From Paragordius varius (taxonomy: Eukaryota > Animalia > Nematomorpha), in contig OZ176055.1 in assembly GCA_964247055.1 (NCBI GenBank), positions 6,510,001-6,574,000 on the forward strand: a DNA stretch of 64,000 nt, written 5' to 3'. Shown here piece by piece: positions 7,694 to 48,240 of the stretch. The notes below the pieces were generated by a model. The model was not told the origin of the DNA and made no database searches. It saw only the letters and a list, made by a program, of their open reading frames with translations. Every line of letters starts with the position of its first letter. Position 1 is the stretch's first letter. The translations under genes were made by a program, and so were the position numbers.

Positions 7694-10600
7694 ATGCTAA
7701 AGTTTTGGTTGGTGATTTTATTGCGCTTCATTACCTGGATTAGGTCTGAAAATGGCGAAAGAAATTATTATGTATTTTTTTCTAATAATTTTAGGCATTT
7801 ATTAAGGAAGTTGGTAAACACCTGCCAGAAAATTTAACTTTCTTGAAGTTTGTGTATAATATTTACCGTTTTAGTGATGATTTAATCTTTTGCTTGCAAA
7901 ATGTTAGCGGGTATGTTATACATCAAGAAGTATGTGTAATAGAAAATCAATTGAGGCCCCCAAACTTGGATATTCCGTCCAAAAATGTAAAATAAATAAA
8001 ATTTAATAGAGCATACAGGTTTTTAATGCCAACATTCTCCGGCTTGCAGATTATGCGTGCAAAGTTCTATTTTTTATCAATGTTATAGATTAAAAATAAT
8101 TTAACAGCATGCAATTTTTTAGCCAATTTATGTGTGCTTTATCATTTTACTGATTCCAATATACTTTGCAAAATATATCACGAAATCGAAGCTGTGCATA
8201 CGGCTAGGTATTTATAATATATAATTATTTTTAGTGCGAATCGGAGCATTTTAATGCCTTCTTTGCAATACAACCAACAAATTTCACTGTTAAAAAATTA
8301 TGTAAGCAGATTATTGTGTTTAATACTATTATTTTTTCTCTTTCTTCCTAGTTATATTAAGGTTATATCCTAGAGCTCAATTTCGTTAATAAACTAGAGT
8401 TTTGAAAGTTATTTTAGTTAAAATTTAATTATAAAACATGGTTTCATGTATTAAAGTTATATTTTTCACAGTTTTGTGACTTCAAAAGTCTAAAATTGGT
8501 ACAGCTCCAGAACAGGATTGAAACGAACAGCTGTTAAAATCAAAATATATCAAGTTTTTGCTGGTAAATGTAGCCTAAAAGCTTTTAAAGTTAATTATTT
8601 ACATTTTCTATCCACCTTAGGCTTTTATTGCTAGCGATTTTGAAAAAAATATAGAAAAAATAGCGGCGAAAAAGTTCGAGATGAGGATTTTTTTACATTT
8701 TTTAAAATTTTTTTGGATGCGCCTAAATGGTTAACGAAATTATATTTTTAAATACCACTTGATACAATAAATACTTTTTAAGATATTCAAATTTCAAATC
8801 GCTTTAGGATTTAAAAATACCCCAAAAGGCAATGGAGTTTTAATATAATTTTTTTTAATATTTTTTATGGTATATTTTTAAAATTAAAAATATTATTTTG
8901 TTAGTTTATTGTTTTAATTTGATAAAAATGCTTTTATTCTTTACAGAACTTGTAGAATTGAGATACTACAACCGATTATAACAAACAACCCATTTTCAAA
9001 TCAATGAAATTAAAGAATTGCTTCTTTTAATGTACTATTAACATTAACCATAATACGATTTTCGTTGAAAAAGAAAAAGTAGCAGCGGAAAAGTTTGGAA
9101 TGATAATTTTATAAAAATTGAATCATGCGCCTCAAGGCTAATGAATGCTATGGCTTAATAATTGAAATATAAAATCGCCCCGAGTTACAAAATACCCCAT
9201 GATTTTAACAGTTACTTGTGTTTTATACCCATATAAATCGAAGTTGTTGGATGAGTCTTTTATTACATTATGCCAAACATTTTGAAAACAAACCACCCCT
9301 TTTTAGGGATGTTCTTATTGTTTTAATAAAACATAAAAAGCAAAACTCCTCTATAACTTTAATACTTTTGAAACCATGTACGTCCATAATAAGCTTATTT
9401 AAAAGCCATTTCTTCTACTATTTCATTTGGATACTTCAGAATTTTTTGAAACAATAATACCTTAATAAAAGATTTTATTAATGTTTGGAAATTGGTTAAA
9501 TGAACATATTTTTTCGTTTAGGACCTCAATAATGCCAGGATTATGGTGACAGCTTTTGACATTCATGGGAGAAATTTGGGGGATTTTGAGATAACTTCCA
9601 TACTTTTGTGCCCCTTACCCAACGCATATTTGGCCAATTCCATTTTGAAAATGCATAAATTTTCCACAATCAAAGTATGATTAATTGTGTAATCGTATTA
9701 ATAATTTCACTAAATATAAACGTAGTATTTATAATCCATATATATTTATATAAAGTGTGCAATTCAACCATCAACTATATGGGATGCTCAATTATCTGAT
9801 ATCATATTTTTTGAGCCATGTAATTATTTCTATTTGCATGTTTTTACAAATTTTAACATTTGTGGATTTGTTGATTAAAATATGTATATTAAAAGTATTT
9901 ATTGTGCTATTTTTGTATCTTTGTGTATGATGCTGAAAATTGAATTTTAAAAGTTGTTATATTAAATTTTTTAAGTAAATATTACATATTTATGAAAGTT
10001 GGCTATTTTTTATGAATGTTTAAGTCTTTTATTTATATAGTTAGGTCATTTTACTCATGGAGAATTAAATTTATTAATATATATAGATATATATCTATAT
10101 GTAATATCTGTTATTCCCGATTTCCATATCTCCGATAATCCGCTTTATATTTTTTACAATCAATCAATCAATTTCAGATTTGGTGATCAATGGTAATAAA
10201 AATGCGTTGAATAAAATTCCCATACCTATTTACATAACCAGTCCAATGGGAAAGTATTTAGACAATGTTGCGGACACCAATTCAGTAGTTTTGGGTGAAA
10301 CATTGTCATCTCCAAATCAAATGTTACCTTCAGCACTTGCTACTGATAAAAGCAATATACGAAAACGTTTTACGTCAAGTATGATAAAAATGAGATTATA
10401 TGAAGAATATTTTTTTTTAAAAAAATTATCGTTAAACTTTAGGTCACAGCTTGCGGAGTTTTATCGTTCAATGGTTTAGGCTTAAGTTGTATATTTTATG
10501 GTTTCATAAAATTTCACCATTAAAATGGTACACCGGCGGTTTCGGTATCCCATTTTTTTCAAATGATTTATTTTGGTATTTGTTTGTCACAATAATTGAA

Positions 10601-29700: not shown

Positions 29701-32700
29701 CCTCATTTTCCTCGTAATACAATATGATCCAAGATGATCGATAAGGCCATTGTTCAATCATATTGATCCATGTGGCCAAACGGACCCATTGAAAATCAAT
29801 ACTAAATGCTTTCATCAATCTCCCTATATATAAATTATAAAAAAATTAGCATTTTTAAACATTTTTTCTAAATTTTAAATATGTCAAAATTTTTATAGAT
29901 TAAAACCTTAAAATTTGGCTCATATTGATTTTATATACCATTTACAGTTTGAATTTATTTTAAAATAAATTATGTGTATTTTTTAAGATTAAAATTACCT
30001 TTATTTTATAAAATTTCTAAAATATAAAATTCTGTTTGAATTTATAATAATGCTGAGAAAATATTAATAAACCATGTCGTGAAAATATATTTCATATTGA
30101 TGAGTTATATTAGCCCGAAAACACATAATTTATTTTTAGGGAGAATTTGGTTTGTTCAAGGGTGAATTTGAACTGTTCAAAGGTGATTTTGATCCATTTT
30201 CGCAACATCAAATAATATAAAACTTCCAGTATAATACTACCACAAAAATCCAAAAAGTGTAATATTTTAAAGAAACGTTTAATAAAAAAACCATTCACAA
30301 GTATGATCAAACCTGAAACGTAAACAATGTTAGTTAATCGCCTCAAACTGCGTGGATTTATGTCACTGAAATAATGGTCATTATTGAAAATTTTTCGTAC
30401 ATCCAAACTATCTGGCATAATAATATTTGGATTATTATTAGTATTAAGATTCGCCAAAGCAGGATTAAAACTTGTATTGATAAGGGCAGAATTTACATTA
30501 TTATTAGCCATGCCAATCGCTTTAAGACTTATGGTACTTGTGTTGGTTGGGAGTGTTACATTACTTTGCGTGGCGGAACTCGTAAAAAAGTTGACAATCC
30601 TATATTATATAAAAAAATGGTATATTTAATGATAATTAAAAACTAAATTAATCTTTTTGATTCATCATAAATACGTTGTTAATAAGGTAGAATATAACAC
30701 AAAATTTATTAAAATCTCAAATTTTGAACATAAAAATCGTAAGGAGTAATCTTAAAAAATAAACTTATAAGTTATTCAAACGGTAAACTAAAATTTGATT
30801 TCTTTAAATAATTCCAGATGATGCATATGTGCAAAAATTTGAGGTTTTTTTAAATTTTGTTACTTTTGTTCACGTCGCATTTAAGAATTTTGATTGGTAT
30901 TACCTGATTTAAAAGTTAAAGAAAACTAATATGTTTTTCTCATTTGGTTTATAGTTTTAAGGTATTTTTAATAGCCAAAATAATACTTGTATAAAACACT
31001 TGCATATTAAATATAAATTCCCAAAAAATAATTAAACATAATTATCATATTAAACTTTTTGCCAATATTTAAGTATCATTTTGTAAACCTTTAAACGACC
31101 TAATAATAAAATGCATAAAGAAAGAAAATTAAAAAACCTATTAGATGTGGATAGGGGTTGCAAAGCCTGCTGATTTTCACCATGGTGACTAGCAATACTT
31201 TCAGTAAAACTGGCTCTATATGAATTAAACAAGATTAAAAAATTATATGATCTAAATTAAACCGTAAATTAGCAACAAACATAAATATATATATAAAAAA
31301 GGTTTAAGTAGTAAAAATGGTTAAAATAATTTTATGCAATGTAAAACTAACCTTGGTATGGATGGATTATTGCTAGATCTTTTAGTCCCAAAGATGCCAG
31401 ATGGCTGCTTGATTTTGATGCTAGTATTACTCAATCCCATATTCGAAGAATATATTAAATGTTGACTTGGGCTATATTTCTGGAATGGGTAAAAGGGGGT
31501 AAAATAGATATTTGGAAATAATATTTTCAAGGTTTTGTGTAAAAAATTAAATTAATACAGTCAAACGCCGGATTCGTTTTTTTGTCAAAAAGATTCTTTT
31601 AATACTCGTTTTTTATAAATAATTTATAATAATTGTAAAGTAAAATTTACAATGTACGAATCTATTGATTAATAATGAACCATAATAATAAGATTGATAT
31701 CAGAGAAAATAAATAAAATATATACTTTTGCCATATTTTTGTATTTAAGCTCAGGGTTAGCAATCTTATTTGCACAAAATTGTAAAAGCCCTTGCCTTTG
31801 GAGAAAAATGGGCAAATTAACCGCATTTCGTAAGTATTCGTATCCCTTGATGGATGATTTGTAAAAAGCACTACTAAGATTACTCTCAATAGCACGTACA
31901 ATTATATGAGGATCTAAAAATCATTTTTTATATGTAGTAAGACCTCTTTTCTAAAATTTTGACAAAAATATTTTATGAATGTTTGAATTAAGGAATATCA
32001 CAAATTATCGTTGTTAGGCATAAAAATGATTAAACATTTTTTATGTGCTTATAAAAACGCATCAAACGTTCTCTATTACAAATAATATATATCAAAAATA
32101 ACTAATATATTAAAAGAGCGAGTTTGAATTTATGGTAAAAATTTTTGATTTGAAAGTTTAGTACCAAAAAGTCATTTTTCACAAACAAAGAGGTAAAAAT
32201 GGGTCGACTAATATTTATCAAAATATACCGTACAAAAAATGATTTACTGTAAATAGGAAAAAATCAAAACCTATAGCTAAAATAGTTATAAAGGGTGAAT
32301 TTGGGTTTGCGGTATTATCGGAAAAGAGTGTTTTAACAGCCTCCAAAACTTGTAAAATCTTTTCTTGTTCACAAGAATCCAGGCCATCTATAATAACAAC
32401 TAATCTAGTTTGACGAACACTGAATGCATCAATCGTTTCAACTAAATCAACCAAATGTTTGACCTTCCGAAAAAAATATATAGTTATAAAAATTTATGGA
32501 TTAAAAGATAACAAGGCGTAAAATATGTAAAAAAAGCTATAGGTGCAGACAAACAGCCGTAATTAAAAAGAAAGTCAACCATATTTTTTGATTCAAAAAT
32601 TTATGCTATTTAGCCTATAATAAATTTTATAGTATATCAATATGGAATAAGGTTAAGAAACCCTCATTATATTTACCAGTGTAGAATGACCCCTGTATTA

Positions 32701-38700: not shown

Positions 38701-40182
38701 TGCCAAAATATCTAAATAAAATTTTGTTTTAAAAAAAAATTACATGTCAAACTAGGTCGACGCCATTTTTATTTTACACAATTTTTGCAAAATATCGTAT
38801 TCATTTAATTTTAATGGTAAAATTAAAGCCAATATCTCACATTGATAGAAATAGAAGAAGCGGTTTATTTTATATTTTTTTATTTTACCATTTCACACAT
38901 GTCGCGTTGACGAAATTTTTACCCTTCAGTTTTAGCTTAAAATAATTAATATCCAATATTTTTTTTAATATAATTCGGATTTTTAATGTTATATAAGTGC
39001 AATATTTTGCCATGGTTTCAATTCCTTTCATGTTTTATAAAGATTTGATTTTAAACAGGCCTGTGGTATCCAACTACCCCAATTTGAATCGAAGGACTTA
39101 AATGAGTGTGTTGTATCCAGGTGTTAATAGATAAAAAATACCTCTTCCCTAATTTTGGTATCGGCATGGTGTTGAAGTAAAACTTCAACGACATTTGGTT
39201 TGTTTTTATAACAGGCCCACATGAGAGCACTCCAACCACCCTTGATATAATATTAAAATTTATATATTTGATAAATTTTCATTATTAAAACAAATTTTGC
39301 ACATATATTTTAGATTATGGAATAAAAATTGTCAAGGCTAAGTTACTAAAAAATAAAAATTAATTTTACAAAAATCAAATATTTAATAATATGGTTAAAA
39401 TATAAATTAAAAAACATATTTTTATATGAAAAATTCCCACAAGAATTATAATTATTTAACTGTTTATAACTTATATAAAATCGAATCTTATTTCAAGAAT
39501 TATTAAAAATAACCCAATATTAAAAGAATTTTAACAAAAATGACATATGATTGGGTAAAGCGATTGATGGATAAAAATAGTTTTATTTATAAATAAAAGC
39601 ATAGAATAAACTTGATTTGTAATCAATTAGTATTGGCCTGATATCAAATAATTCAATTGTATTAAAGCTTGAATGATATAAATATGAAAAAAACAAGATT
39701 AAAAAACGGTAAAATTCAAATTTAAAACCAAAATACCATATCTCTATGATCAACATGAGCCCCATTATTTAACAAAATTTCACAATTTTTCGCATTCCCT
39801 TCTTTGGCTGCGACCATCAAAGGCGACCATTGATCATTGTCCACTATATAAATTGGAAATATTATATATTTTTTAGATAAAAAAAATCCAAAAATTAAAA
39901 ATAGTATTTTAAAATTCAAAAACTTTGAACGTATAACAGAAATGGTTATAAAAAATAAATGATACATGCATTCGGATCTGAACCAGCATTTATTAAATCA
40001 GTCAGAATTTCACTTGTCGAACCAGCAGCAAAATGTAAAAATGTTTGGCCCGCATTATCTAATGACTGATTAATGTATGGCTCTAATTCTGGCAAAATGG
40101 TCTTGAATTGACTGTTTTTCTTCTCATCGATATAGCTTAGAGCTGTCTTTATAGTCGCTAAAGCAATTGGAGTTACTTTCAT
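20784..40182 (-). CDS. KIDINS220: Kinase D-interacting substrate of 220 kDa/ARMS (ankyrin repeats, KAP P-loop NTPase, 4 TM, SAM-like); 3' end tentative
   Basis: Exons 40182-39966, 39843-39737, 39240-39142 ([12 protein letters not shown]), 38196-38098 (LIWAAGRG), 37837-37631, 37171-36980, 36664-36560 ([10 protein letters not shown]), 36237-36139, 35780-35603 (GDTALHI...LLLRNPK), 35356-35192 ([13 protein letters not shown]...[11 protein letters not shown]), 34860-34681, 34274-34118, 33807-33665 (RFLFTDY). Later exons encode [56 protein letters not shown] and the SAM-like NVNG...MSFGDW. C-terminal low-complexity exons reach ~20784. Confidence 0.95.
21868..22040. mobile_element. Tc1/mariner-type MITE (173 bp)
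   Basis: TA|cagtatgcat..gatggttgcttatttca ... tgaaataagcaccatt..atgcatactg|TA. Second copy at 61452-61629. Confidence 0.8.
25155..25417. mobile_element. TACC...GGTA MITE, degenerate copy
   Basis: ccatttacagctcaaattcaccc ... gtgtaaatggta. Confidence 0.7.
25676..26004. mobile_element. TACC...GGTA MITE, best-preserved copy (329 bp)
   Basis: taccatttacagttcaaattcaccc / gggtgaatttgaactgtaaatggta perfect 25-bp TIR; four 21-bp left repeats; TA flanks. Confidence 0.85.
29936..30197. mobile_element. TACC...GGTA MITE, degenerate copy
   Basis: taccatttacagtttgaatt ... gttcaagggtgaatttgaactgttcaaaggtga. Confidence 0.65.
38574..39123 (+). mobile_element. piggyBac-like MITE, copy 2, in KIDINS220 intron 3
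   Basis: TTAA at 38570-38573 and 39124-39127; perfect 20-bp inner inverted repeat cttcgattcaaattggggta / taccccaatttgaatcgaag; colinear with 1963-2527. Confidence 0.75.
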
Positions 40183-40222
40183 ATGACTTTAGACGCATAC
40201 CTTTTTAAAGCTGATACGGCAT

Positions 40223-40411
40223 ATGTTTCAAAGATTTTTCCAACTTTTGATCCACAACCACGATTTAATTGAAAAACTCTCAAATACCGCTTTTATCCGA
40301 AGATCAGCTCAATTATCCGTTTATGCCTTTTTAAGATTGAAGCATTTGGGAGAAAATCAATACAAATCTTTGCTCGAAAATTTTCAAAACCTGATTGATC
40401 CAAAGTTTTAA
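40223..40411 (+). CDS. NCBP2AS2: NCBP2AS2-like microprotein, 62 aa, single exon
   Basis: MFQRFFQLLIHNHDLIEKLSNTAFIRRSAQLSVYAFLR matches the family motif L.R.L...L...QL(V/I)E(R/K)LS.S..IRRAAQLT..A. Confidence 0.8.
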   Translation: MFQRFFQLLIHNHDLIEKLSNTAFIRRSAQLSVYAFLRLKHLGENQYKSLLENFQNLIDPKF

Positions 40412-40438
40412 GACGCTTAATTTTGTTAGATATAAGAA

Positions 40439-41024
40439 ATGAACCGATTAGTTTATGTGGCTGGAGGTAGTGGATTTATTGGCAAACACTTATGCAATAA
40501 GCTTATTGAACTTGGTTATGAACCATGTTTAATAACTCGCACAAAACAGGACTTACATAAATACATTTTATGGAATGACTTAGAAAAATTAAAAGACTGC
40601 CATGCTGTTATTGGCCTACAAGGTCAAAATATAATGGGTATATTTATTAACAATTAATTTTAGATTTATCGCGACGATGGAATAAGGAGTTTGAAAAAGA
40701 TTTATATGATAGCCGCATAAACACAACTAAAAAATTGGTAAAAGCAATACAAAATATTAAAACAAACATCTTTATATCATCGTCTGCGATAGGAATATAC
40801 GAACCAGAAGTATCCAAAACATATGATGAATCCTACAAATCTGATGTTAATTATAGTTCCCTTTCTGACTTCAAAGGCAAAGAAATTTTATCTTTAGCTA
40901 AAATGTGTCACGATTGGGAAGATGCGGCCATTACTAACAACGTAAATTCTACAATATTGATATTGAATTTTTTTCAATTATCCATTTCTATATATACCGT
41001 CAACCGGTTTTTTGATTGGTTTAA

Positions 41025-41066
<42 letters not shown>

Positions 41067-43172
41067 TTTTTGATATAGTCAAGAAACAAAATAATTTTTT
41101 GAGATAACTTATGACCAACGGTTGCCGCAAAAATTTTATTTGTTGACAACCTAGTTTTTGAAATATTGAAAGAAAATTGAAATCGGGCAAAAAGTTTATT
41201 AAAGTTAATAAAGGATAATTTAAAAAATAATGATAAAACTCGAGATATTATGGTTTTTTATCATTTTAGGGGATATTTTATATATATAAATAAAAGCATA
41301 TAGTTGTTTGTATAGAATCTCAGAACATATTTAAAAGATAAAAAAATAACTATATTAAAAAAAATTAATTATTTACTAGCTAAACTCACTATTAAAACCT
41401 TAATATATATTTTATTCACTAAAAACTTGTATATCAAAATAAAACTAAAAAATACTTTTTATTTTCTCATTTTTATGCTCGGTTTATGACGGTATAGAAA
41501 GATTTACTGTTTTATTTTGGAATTTCAGAGGATCGAAAATCATAAATATATAAATTAATACTAAATAAAATTCAAAAGTGGTGGAAAATCAACCAAATAT
41601 CCGTACATATCCCAGTATAAATATTAATTTGTGTTAAAACAAACTTTTTACGGGTTGTAATGATTTTTGGTTGATATTCCACTACTTTTAAATCCTATTT
41701 TGCCTAAATGATATAGTTTATAATTCTTAATATAAGCTTTCAAAATAAAACTATTATTTAACCAAAATATTTTTCCTTTTACGACAGTTATAATGTTTTC
41801 TATTTATTTTATTAGAACAAAAATACTACAATCATACGGACTGGTAATTAATTATTATTATTTTTACAGTACTTTTAAATTAATTAATGAAATTTGCGTA
41901 GATTTTACCAAAATTGTTTTACACTATTTCAGGTATAGTACTTGGACCAGACGGAGGTGTCATTAAAAGCATGATTTTACCCTTCAAATTTGGTTTGGGT
42001 AATAAAGCTTTGGGATCAGGTCAACAATGGTTTTCTTGGATCCATATTGATGATTGGGTTGGTATCGTTATAAAATGTATTGAGGATGCAAAAAGTAAAC
42101 ATTTTGAATGTTATCTCAAACATATATTCGTATTTAATTCATTTTGTGAAAGCAATAATTTCCTTTATATGAGAAAATGTACTTATCGTTATAAATGAAA
42201 TATATACCATTAAATATATAAGATTAAATATATAAGATAAGGTTGCATGTTAAATCAATTAATATTGTTAATCTTTTACAGATAATTTGTTCGAATTGCG
42301 TTATCTTTACAATTTTGGTATTCATTTTGTATTTATGTTATCACTTAGAAATATTTTCGCAGTATTATTGCTCCCGCTTTTTAATTAAATTGAAATATTT
42401 ATACAGTAAAATTATTTTTAATAATACGGTGTATAAATTCAGTCATTCACGGTCAATTGATAGTAGTCAATTAAATTTATAGGTGTAAATATACAATCAT
42501 ATAAAACCAGTTTTAAAAAATAATTAATAAATATTAACACAAAGATAATAATATTACGAATTACATGTATTATGAAATAGCCACACTATCGATTATTTTT
42601 AAGCGCGGTAACACTCATAATTTTTAATACATTCATAACCTTTTAGATTGCCAAAAAAATTATAAAGATGAAGATAAAAAAAATTATTGTTTCATAGTTG
42701 TTTGACACATTTACTGATATTTATACTCCAAATAAGTAAATCAAGAATTTTATAAATAATTCAGGGCCATTTACACTTTTAGGGTCGTAATTTTATCTTT
42801 TGTTTCAAACCCTTTATTTTCAATAAACAACACATAATATATGTTATAGATTCAATGTCTCAACAACAGGAACCAACAATTCACGAATCATACCAAACCA
42901 ATGCAGGCAAACACAGAATTTATAATGCAGTCTCACCTCATGCCTGTAGGAATGTGGAATTTCATTCGGCCTTTGCAAAAGCATTACATAGACCTCTCTT
43001 TCTTCCAGCCATGCCTCAAACCGTACTAAGCCTGATAATGGGACCTACCCGAGCCCAACTCTTATGTTTGGGTCAACATGTGGTCCCTAACGAAACCCTA
43101 AACAAATTACATTATGTGTATCAATTTCCTGACATAGAAGAAGCTTGCTTTGATATTGTGTCCAAATTATAA
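40439..43172 (+). CDS. SDR39U1: Epimerase family protein SDR39U1, 329 aa; join(40439..40637,40664..40941,41816..41843,41933..42094,42850..43172)
   Basis: GGSGFIG Rossmann motif, RRWNKEF...SRINTT, ISSSAIGIY, YDES, GIVLGPDGG, PFKFGLG..LGSGQQWFSWIHIDD, LLCLGQHVVP, YQFPDIEEA. Spliced length 990 nt, all GT-AG. Confidence 0.95.
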
Positions 43173-43411
43173 GAATAAATTATGTATTACAGTGTGAATA
43201 ACTCAACATTGGTTGTTTTTATAATATTGCCAGATGCTATGTAGAGCAATTGTGGGAGAAGCAAGAAAAAAAATAATTTTTAACCAAAAACATTATTCTT
43301 TGCTGTATATGCTCTCTGACAATAATTAAAAAAACTCTAATATATATTTAATCATACATTAAATTATATGGTATGAGCGAACAAAAATAAAGAAAATATA
43401 TAGCAGATATA

Positions 43412-45905: not shown

Positions 45906-47773
45906 TTAATTTTGAAATTCGGACAATATAGTTGTAAGCCCTTTAGCTAATTCTGAGGCATTCAAAAGCACATCTTTATTTTGTGATTGATTGATGCACA
46001 TTTTCAATAACGTTAAGAATTTTTCCATATATATCATATTATTGACCATTGTATAAGGATTTGCTAATGATAGCGATATGACCGTTTTCCATGCCCTAAC
46101 AAATGTTAGCCATATACAGTCCTGTAAATCTATCGATATATTTGGATTTTTAATCGCTGTGTTTTTTGAGAATACTAATTCTAAAATTTCTATAGAAAAT
46201 TTTGAGAAGGTTTGAATAGCTGTGTCAAAATTCATGGCGTTTTGAGCTATGATAAGTACCTGAACTAAATATTCAACTAGCAAATTTAAATTATATGATT
46301 CAAGTATTTGAGTTAGTTTTTGTCTCTTATCCAACATTTTATAAACGGATTCCGCAAAATTAATTATCCAGGGGTAAAAATAGAAATTTAATATATTAGG
46401 ATTAAGTGTTGCAGTTATATTATTCTGCAAATTATTTCTGGAATTAGGGAGAAGCGGTTCCGGTTCTTTAAGTTTTAAATCAGTCATATTATTAGTTATT
46501 GAAGGAGAGTCGAATTTTCGTGTTAAGCATTGAAACAATAAATAGAGAATTTCCTTTTTTTGTTTCAAATTATATATGATTGGGGTAGTAGCAAAATACG
46601 AATCAGCTAATATGGGTAAAAAATAATTTTCAAATTTTTGAACAGTTTTGATTAAAAGATCAAACCGTAGTCGATAAAATTTTTCATTGTTATCTTCATC
46701 GTCGACACTGATTTCGAATGCAAAATCAAAAACACTCTTTTTATGTTCCACATAATCCAAAGGATCCAAATTTATAATAATAGACAGTATGGATAAAAGT
46801 TCATGAACTGATTTATTTGCCAAATTAATTTTTGGTTTCATGTCTAGTAAATTTACATTTTCAGTGCCTCCATGAATGGCATGAAAAAATTCGGTTAAAG
46901 TTGGTAAACTTTTGATCTCTTTAACAGTAATTAATTGGCATGAAGTGGTGTTTGATGATTTTATAATTGTAAAGGGTGTCATTGGTTTACTTCTATCCTT
47001 TTCACCTTCGAGAATATAATATTTCAATCTCAAAATAAAATTACTAAATTGTTGATATACTTGTGGATATTGTTCTTCCAAAATTTTATCAAACGATACA
47101 TCGGTAAGGGAATTAACATTTGAAAATTTGAGCATTATCATACCAAATATGCGATTATTTTCCCCTGGATCTTCTAAATGCTCTATAGTCGCAAACAATA
47201 ACTTTTCTTTGTTAATTCGTTCGCTAATTGGCGATATATTTGATGCTGATACTATAAGTTTTGTTAGATGACTATGTTGTTCCTTATGCAATTTGTGAAA
47301 CTTTGACCAGTTTTCTCTAATGGAAGTAAGGACTTCGGAAATACCTTCATCATTTACGCGCATCAAATATATCCACCAATTAAAGTATGATGAATCATGA
47401 CTAAAACCTGTAAATGTATTTATAACAAATGTCTCTTGGGCAATTTTATGGGGAAAAAGCTTGATTGAATAGTCAGATCCCATGGAAAATATTACGGACA
47501 AAATAGATCTCCTTCTTAACGATGATATATTAGACAAATAATCGGTCCAAACATGCAATACTCTCGCATCATTTATGTTATGGTAAAGAATTTTAATTAT
47601 TTTTTCATTAAAATTAAATAAATGAAAAAATTCGCCATAATCTATCTTCATATCATTTTTAATAATCCACATAAGCTGGTAAAAAACATTCGGTAGCAGG
47701 ATCTCATTGCGAAAACTCTTTGCTTGCAAACAGCATTGCAACTTTTTTAATGTCGTCTTAGGATTAAAGCTAA
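45906..47773 (-). CDS. Large (~1.87 kb) coding exon for an alpha-helical solenoid protein, tentatively NUP188-like
   Basis: 649 stop-free codons in very AT-rich DNA. The ORF-track start (47855) lies inside a MITE, so the exon probably begins at an acceptor near 47773. Weak recalled similarity to NUP188 (LPNVFYQLM, NDARVLHVWTDYLS, FVRAWKTVISL). Product uncertain. Confidence 0.55.
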
Positions 47774-47840
47774 CTAAATCAATAATAAACATGGGTTTTA
47801 AAAGATGTGGTGAAATAACATGTGTAAAACAACCGATTAA

Positions 47841-48240
47841 CACTTGGATATACACACATTCATTTCAGTCCTCCGATTCAAATTGGGATTTTCAGACCTC
47901 AGTCTTGTTTAAAATTATATATTTCAATATGGAATAAATTGGAACCAGGTCAAAGGTTTGCGTTTAGATAGCATTAAAACACCGAAAAATGAAAAAAATA
48001 TACTCAAAAATACTTAATATTATTTATTTAGACGTAAAACCTGAAGGTAAAGATTAGGTGTGTGCATTCGTTAAATAGCAAAAAATGCAAAACAACCACT
48101 TTTTCTTGATTTAAAAAAATAGCCATAATTTTGGTAAAATTAAAAAACACGATATTTTGCAAAAATGTTGCAAAATGAAAGTGTTGAATGAAAGTATTTT
48201 TAAAACTCAATTTAATTTAGATATTTTGGGTTGGATGATA
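47841..48240 (-). mobile_element. piggyBac-like MITE, diverged inverted copy, truncated
   Basis: TTAA (47837-47840) then cacttggatatacacac...cctccgattcaaattggg, the reverse complement of the 3' end of copies 1 and 2. Confidence 0.65.

Follow-up and report, generated by a model that had tools for sequence, protein, structure and literature searches.

In a 64,000-nucleotide (nt) stretch of the genome of the nematomorph Paragordius varius (contig OZ176055.1, positions 6,510,001 to 6,574,000; the whole stretch is called the window below), three start codons crowd together in the order KIDINS220-like gene (minus strand), 62-codon microprotein gene (plus strand) and SDR39U1 (plus strand). On the sequence evidence, the microprotein and SDR39U1 may well be carried on a single bicistronic messenger RNA (mRNA) that is translated by leaky scanning. 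The layout is of a known kind, a bicistronic arrangement with a small upstream cistron, and the pair of an NCBP2AS2-like protein with SDR39U1 is new. The crowding had been picked out in a first-pass annotation, and all of its coordinates proved exact on re-reading: a gap of 40 nt between the divergent start codons, an open reading frame (ORF) of 62 codons, and a spacer of 27 nt ahead of the SDR39U1 start. The three gene calls made there (KIDINS220, NCBP2AS2-like and SDR39U1) are likewise supported, with the NCBP2AS2 label resting on placement in a protein-language atlas and not on alignment. The window is AT-rich, with a GC content of about 27%, and the genome assembly that was searched comprises 110 Mb in 44 contigs.

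In the proposed mechanism, transcription of the microprotein would begin in a compact divergent start region shared with KIDINS220, giving a leader of at most about 37 nt, and the resulting mRNA would continue through SDR39U1 and end at the AATAAA at 43174. Some ribosomes would recognise the poorly placed microprotein AUG (short leader, C at -3, T at +4) and make the microprotein, while those scanning past it would meet almost no AUG for 213 nt and would start at the SDR39U1 AUG, which has G at -3 (taagaaATGa). Reinitiation after the microprotein stop may also contribute to the translation of SDR39U1. Four features expected of leaky scanning are present at the locus, namely a short distance between the ORFs, a weak start for ORF1, a stronger start for ORF2 and few ATGs. 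The earlier suggestion of a transcript common to the microprotein and SDR39U1 is supported by these start contexts, by the scarcity of ATGs and by the absence of AATAAA between the two genes.

The evidence on 3'-end formation bears on the extent of the upstream message. On the plus strand, AATAAA does not occur from 39960 to 41206; the first copy, at 41207, lies inside an SDR39U1 intron, and the only poly(A)-like signal ahead of SDR39U1 is an AATACA at 40359. The 3' ends of SDR39U1 and of DPH3, a downstream gene in another closely spaced pair of this genome, were verified, and both use canonical AATAAA. Because no AATAAA precedes 41207, SDR39U1 has its own AATAAA and the DPH3 signal is canonical too, the microprotein message almost certainly extends into SDR39U1, as far as this can be read from the letters. 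A serious rival, which we regard as possible but on the unlikely side, is that two overlapping monocistronic transcripts are produced as a consequence of crowding in a compact genome, with SDR39U1 transcription starting inside or just after the microprotein ORF, and with the microprotein mRNA ending at a non-canonical poly(A) signal in SDR39U1 exon 1 or intron 1. Variant signals are available for this (ATTAAA at 40588 and AATATA at 40628), the 27-nt spacer together with the AT-rich ORF could hold an initiator, and, as the 40-nt divergent gap shows, start regions in this genome can be extremely compact. However, separate transcripts leave unexplained both the scarcity of ATGs and the succession of a weak and then a strong start context, and the canonical AATAAA at the two verified 3' ends speaks against the use of a variant. 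Moreover, gene pairs spaced by 0-3 nt elsewhere in the genome cannot have independent promoters outside coding sequence.

The scarcity of ATGs was measured against a baseline of 24.7 ATGs per kb, obtained from eleven confident coding exons of this genome. Across the 213 nt from one start to the other, a single ATG is observed, which opens an out-of-frame mini-ORF, against an expectation of 5.3 (p = 0.03). When the upstream cistrons of five tight pairs are taken together, the count is 9 and the expectation about 22 (p = 2e-4). The base at -3 follows the same division between upstream and downstream cistrons, being C, T, C and T at four upstream starts and G, A, A, A and A at five downstream starts (Fisher p = 0.008). 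Several points weigh against a shared message read by leaky scanning. At the microprotein-SDR39U1 locus alone the depletion of ATGs reaches only p = 0.03, and the tight pairs used for comparison were chosen, not sampled at random. A crude genome-wide set of start codons shows no purine preference at -3, although this set is probably contaminated by ATGs that are not starts, and the KIDINS220-like ATG likewise has C at -3. The spacer of 27 nt exceeds that of the 0-3 nt pairs, and an internal promoter or acceptor is physically possible within it. Finally, word searches with the 62-aa ORF and with SDR39U1 exon 1 gave no usable relatives in which the adjacency of the two genes could be compared.

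Four tight pairs elsewhere in the genome (COX17-DPH3, PFDN1-TMEM199, ANAPC16-like-RCL1 and NDUFAF8-like-UTP6; Table 1) were re-verified from the sequence as the comparison set. As at the microprotein locus, the first gene of each pair is small, in many cases mitochondrial, and directly followed on the same strand by a larger housekeeping gene; the upstream start context is weak, the downstream start has a purine at -3, and ATGs are few. They differ in their spacers, which measure 0-3 nt compared with 27 nt here, unless a candidate 25-nt micro-intron at the end of the microprotein ORF is spliced. Since neither a promoter nor an acceptor would fit into spacers of 0-3 nt, we infer that shared transcripts would be the rule for this class of pairs. 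The locus had been described as the strongest operon-like signal in the window; it belongs instead to a class that recurs across the genome, and its spacing is looser than that of the other pairs. Taken alone it is ordinary for this genome, and its value is that of one data point toward a genome-wide description.

Bicistronic mRNAs that are translated by leaky scanning and carry the same signatures have been demonstrated by experiment in green algae (PMC11291117) and for the sloth1/sloth2 genes of Drosophila (PMC9681215). In those loci, as in this one, a small ORF1 precedes a same-strand ORF2 by a few to a few tens of nt, a weak ORF1 context is followed by a stronger ORF2 context, ATGs are few and the leader is short, and ORF1 often encodes a small mitochondrial protein. 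The differences are that the transcript and its mode of translation are experimental there and proposed here, that the NCBP2AS2-like protein and SDR39U1 are not a described pair, and that the host here belongs to Nematomorpha, for which the literature search found no such published loci. The locus would be one more example of bicistronic packing in animals, here in a genome whose upstream cistrons repeatedly encode small mitochondrial proteins.

Table 1. Features of the KIDINS220-microprotein-SDR39U1 locus (window coordinates) and the four tight gene pairs used for comparison
Feature	Position	Strand	Details
KAP-family P-loop NTPase exon	32221..32454	-	Pfam PF07693, E 1.7e-10
KIDINS220-like exon 1	39966..40182	-	start codon 'cat' 40180-40182; end at GTATCA donor, approximate
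Divergent gap	40183..40222		40 nt between start codons; central TTTTTAAAG, no GT
Microprotein gene, NCBP2AS2/Mrx7-like	40223..40411	+	62 codons + TAA; start context cggcatATGt
Sole ATG between microprotein and SDR39U1 starts	40323..40334	+	out-of-frame 3-codon mini-ORF, ATG CCT TTT TAA
Candidate micro-intron, unproven	40405..40429	+	25 nt, GTTTTA...TTGTTAG
Spacer, microprotein to SDR39U1	40412..40438	+	27 nt; ttaattttgttag at 40417-40429; without poly(A) signal
SDR39U1 exon 1	40439..40637	+	PF01370; TIGR01777 positions 1-70; PDB 4B4O residues 3-65
SDR39U1 micro-intron 1	40638..40663	+	26 nt, GTATAT...TTTTAG; joins 67 and 135 open codons
SDR39U1 exon 2	40664..40941	+	TIGR01777 94-149; GTAAAT donor at 40942; end approximate
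SDR39U1 exon 3	41933..42094	+	TIGR01777 162-215, E 1.2e-16; acceptor tttcag ends 41932
SDR39U1 last exon (DUF1731)	42870..43172	+	PF08338; TIGR01777 215-291; stop 43170-43172
AATAAA poly(A) signal	43174..43179	+	1 nt past SDR39U1 stop; first exonic/3' AATAAA downstream of both cistrons
COX17-DPH3	locus L004		spacer 1 nt (TAA-A-ATG)
PFDN1-TMEM199	locus L016		TAATG overlap
ANAPC16-like-RCL1	locus L014		spacer 2 nt
NDUFAF8-like-UTP6	locus L011		spacer 3 nt

The upstream cistron, which is single-copy in the genome, was characterised through a distant arthropod relative. A phmmer search of 1.84 billion representative proteins (E up to 1e-3) returned exactly one match for the 62-aa ORF, a hypothetical protein of 85 aa from the millipede Chamberlinius hualienensis, with E 3.9e-5 and 49% identity over 49 residues. 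The alignment begins at the initiator M1 and contains 27 invariant columns, up to residue 59. In the reciprocal search the millipede protein matches only the 62-aa ORF among 4,609 stop-to-stop ORFs from 308 kb of the genome, and 1,000 shuffles of the ORF score at most 6 bits compared with 39.7 bits for the real one. These two controls argue that the similarity is not an effect of composition, and by this similarity the 62 codons form a real and conserved gene for a microprotein, unannotated and of a kind that standard gene callers would miss.

The identity of the microprotein was approached through the protein-language atlas, in which the 62-aa ORF (0.89, 188 shared features) adjoins a chordate cluster named 'protein NCBP2AS2' and the millipede relative (0.91, 199 shared features) falls on the same cluster; both are also placed beside a fungal cluster that is partly Mrx7. 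From this placement, not from alignment, the microprotein is probably an orthologue of the mitochondrial microprotein NCBP2AS2, and with that label, held at the same strength, the locus adds a non-vertebrate, non-arthropod member to a poorly characterised lineage. A Pfam search of the 62-aa ORF found no family, with no match to PF10906 even at E up to 10, and word-index searches with the ORF or its millipede relative gave no match beyond the queries themselves. Exact look-ups of the ORF, the millipede relative and DPH3 found neither a contig nor a cluster. The AlphaFold2 (AF2) model of the ORF consists of two helices at low confidence (pLDDT 63). The protein is thus shorter than 100 aa, helical in this low-confidence model and encoded by a single exon, with no intron needed, and it has a conserved N-terminal core, which the N-terminus of vertebrate NCBP2AS2 presumably resembles; we take this resemblance as a lead only.

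In vertebrates, NCBP2-AS2 is reported to be a mitochondrial microprotein (bioRxiv 10.1101/2025.01.25.634884). The vertebrate protein is also small and helical, and its gene likewise stands head to head with a neighbour at a bidirectional start region. It differs in its length of about 95-99 aa, compared with 62 aa here, and in its head-to-head partner, which is NCBP2 there and KIDINS220 here; only here does SDR39U1 start within 27 nt downstream.

For the downstream cistron, the exons were searched singly against TIGR01777. Four exon ORFs match the profile colinearly, their summed score of 173 bits lying below the whole-protein cut-off of 207. Exon 1 carries the Rossmann motif GGSGFIG, the reading frame runs across the 26-nt micro-intron into the exon that covers TIGR01777 positions 94-149, and the best solved relative of the last exon is PDB 4B4O, 'epimerase family protein SDR39U1' (E 2.9e-10). 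By these matches the downstream gene is assigned to SDR39U1 (TIGR01777 / yfcH family). The ATG at 40439 is taken as its true start because TIGR01777 position 1 falls at residue 5, with which residue 3 of PDB 4B4O is also aligned, and because an in-frame TAA lies within the spacer at 40433-40435; for the same reason, anything spliced onto 40430 would be untranslated. In the provisional model the junction between exons 2 and 3 is out of phase and TIGR01777 positions 150-161 were not found; a micro-exon may be hidden in the intron of about 1 kb at 40942-41932. The same intron contains a (TA)n microsatellite at about 41028-41066. In vertebrates, SDR39U1 is regarded as a mitochondrial enzyme that binds NADP(H) and whose function is unknown (PMC12919160); the pairing of SDR39U1 with the microprotein here could hint at the co-expression of two mitochondrial proteins.

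On the opposite strand, ankyrin matches were found in the minus-strand exon ORFs 39946-40182, which translates as MKVTPIALA..., and 39722-39967. Ankyrin repeats followed by a KAP NTPase exon form the architecture of KIDINS220, and by this order of domains the gene is classed as KIDINS220-like. Its ATG is fixed by an in-frame stop two codons upstream. The two divergent start codons are held in CATATG palindromes (40180-40185 and 40220-40225) that flank the gap, and each is mirrored by an opposite-strand ATG that opens a short out-of-frame ORF. From the positions of these and one further out-of-frame ATG (plus strand, 40183; minus strand, 40222 and about 40198), we argue that both transcription starts would fall inside the 40-nt gap and that both divergent transcripts would have very short leaders. 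This reading of the gap bears out the earlier statement that promoters and untranslated regions (UTRs) at the locus must overlap neighbouring coding sequence. A canonical TATA role for the TTTTTAAAG at the centre of the gap was considered and rejected, since it lies too near either ATG. Elsewhere in the genome, the PFDN1-TMEM199 pair stands head to head with a DEAD-box (eIF4A-like) gene at a distance of 238 nt (L016:2340-2577), which is far roomier than 40 nt.

The gap is also where a nested arrangement fails to find room. It had been suggested that the microprotein sits inside a 5'-UTR intron of SDR39U1, such that a noncoding upstream exon is spliced to the acceptor ending at 40429, and the in-frame TAA after that position would suit this, any spliced-on sequence being untranslated. 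However, GT is absent from the 40-nt gap, which would force the donor into an antisense position within KIDINS220 exon 1; the microprotein would still require its own transcript running into SDR39U1, and nothing else favours the idea, which we consider very improbable.

A further possibility is an operon resolved by spliced leader (SL) trans-splicing, in favour of which stands the position of the species: nematodes use SL operons, and Nematomorpha are their sister phylum. In such an operon, a primary transcript spanning the two genes would be cut and an SL would be added by trans-splicing at the acceptor ending at 40429, leaving a capped SDR39U1 mRNA with a 9-nt genomic leader; the microprotein might gain an SL as well, at 40211. 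The acceptor-like ttaattttgttag reported in the 27-nt spacer was confirmed, it stands 9 nt ahead of the SDR39U1 ATG, and trans-splicing would spare the genome from fitting promoters into 40 nt. However, a genome-wide search for nematode SL1 with its donor, allowing up to 3 mismatches, gave no match (an SL of novel sequence lies outside the scope of this search), no match to RF00198 was found in the genome, and the dispersed 5S genes have no SL-like element linked to them in common. The microprotein has no AATAAA upstream of the acceptor for the formation of its 3' end, and about 9% of random windows of 27 nt here contain an acceptor-like site that is equally good (YAG preceded by at least 8 pyrimidines in 11), which places the observed site near chance. 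Moreover, the pairs spaced by 0-3 nt have no acceptor between their cistrons. In the literature, the search linked no paper on Nematomorpha with trans-splicing, and nothing usable was found on spliced leaders in Nematomorpha or dicyemids. The proposal of the first-pass annotation that trans-splicing resolves the transcript is not supported by these results, and we judge an SL operon to be improbable.

Compared with the SL2-type operons of nematodes, the locus is alike in its close same-strand genes and in the acceptor-like site just before the downstream ATG. It differs in that no SL gene was found here and no AAUAAA precedes the acceptor, in that the spacer of such operons is about 100 nt with a U-rich element whereas that of the present locus is 27 nt, and in that other tight pairs of this genome are spaced by 0-3 nt. 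Rfam and tRNA scans of the 64-kb window were empty. In the genome as a whole, at least 19 5S rRNA genes are dispersed over several chromosomes and are not in tandem, with a loose cluster of mixed orientation at G000:C4:290000-316000.

The same acceptor-like site could also serve cis-splicing, which would modify the bicistronic reading without replacing it. In this variant, which we hold to be rather unlikely, the 25-nt micro-intron at 40405-40429 would be spliced, the microprotein would end in ...DPKYKK with a TGA overlapping the SDR39U1 ATG (aaATGa), and SDR39U1 would be translated by termination-reinitiation together with leaky scanning. The 25-nt GT...TAG segment, with a TTAAT branch-like motif, fits the 21-27 nt micro-intron class of this genome; micro-introns occur here at the 5' ends of transcripts, SDR39U1 intron 1 itself being 26 nt long; and splicing would make the pair resemble those that overlap or are spaced by 0-3 nt. 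The genome does make use of GTT donors, as the CX9C spacing of the NDUFAF8-like protein is restored only by splicing a GTTAAT...TAG intron (L011). Against this, a GT stands 21-27 nt upstream of 28% of acceptor-like sites by chance, the micro-introns read here do not usually have T at position +3 of the donor, the millipede relative is uninformative on the C-terminus, and the idea was formed only after the sequence had been seen.

Over 308 kb, de novo detection of micro-introns from the continuity of ORFs gave too much noise for a splice model to be trained on. Two further apparent GTT-donor examples were rejected, one in RCL1, where the RTC profile shows a long intron at the site, and one at window position 10458, which is without family support. 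The NDUFAF8-like twin-CX9C gene (L011:1179-1409; G000:C3, about 10.1838 Mb) has two GTT-donor micro-introns, GTTAAT and GTTTAT, and its last exon provides about 4 residues before a stop that abuts the UTP6 start. Three identical copies of a 25-nt GT...AG candidate that is open on both flanks lie at intervals of 1,058 nt at L034:7190-9340 (minus strand), a recurrence that indicates a putative tandemly repeated coding unit.

Beyond the single bicistronic locus, a more far-reaching reading is that small mitochondrial proteins (NCBP2AS2-like, COX17, COX19, NDUFAF8 and SMIM12) are systematically the upstream cistrons at many loci, and that the 25-nt micro-intron is spliced here to give ATGA, or alternatively that these are the first SL-type operons in Nematomorpha. 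We regard this as distinctly unlikely; the former, if true, would amount to a lineage-wide, splicing-tuned programme of polycistronic expression in an animal.

Other long open frames and repeats were also recorded. The longest open frame of the window, of 649 codons at 45906-47855 (minus strand), matches no Pfam family at E up to 0.01, and may represent either a mobile-element ORF or one exon of an unrecognised gene. The same 19 nt, GTTATAATTTTTATTTCAG, are found within long open frames at L018, L019 and L035, and are probably part of a dispersed repeat or a mobile-element gene.

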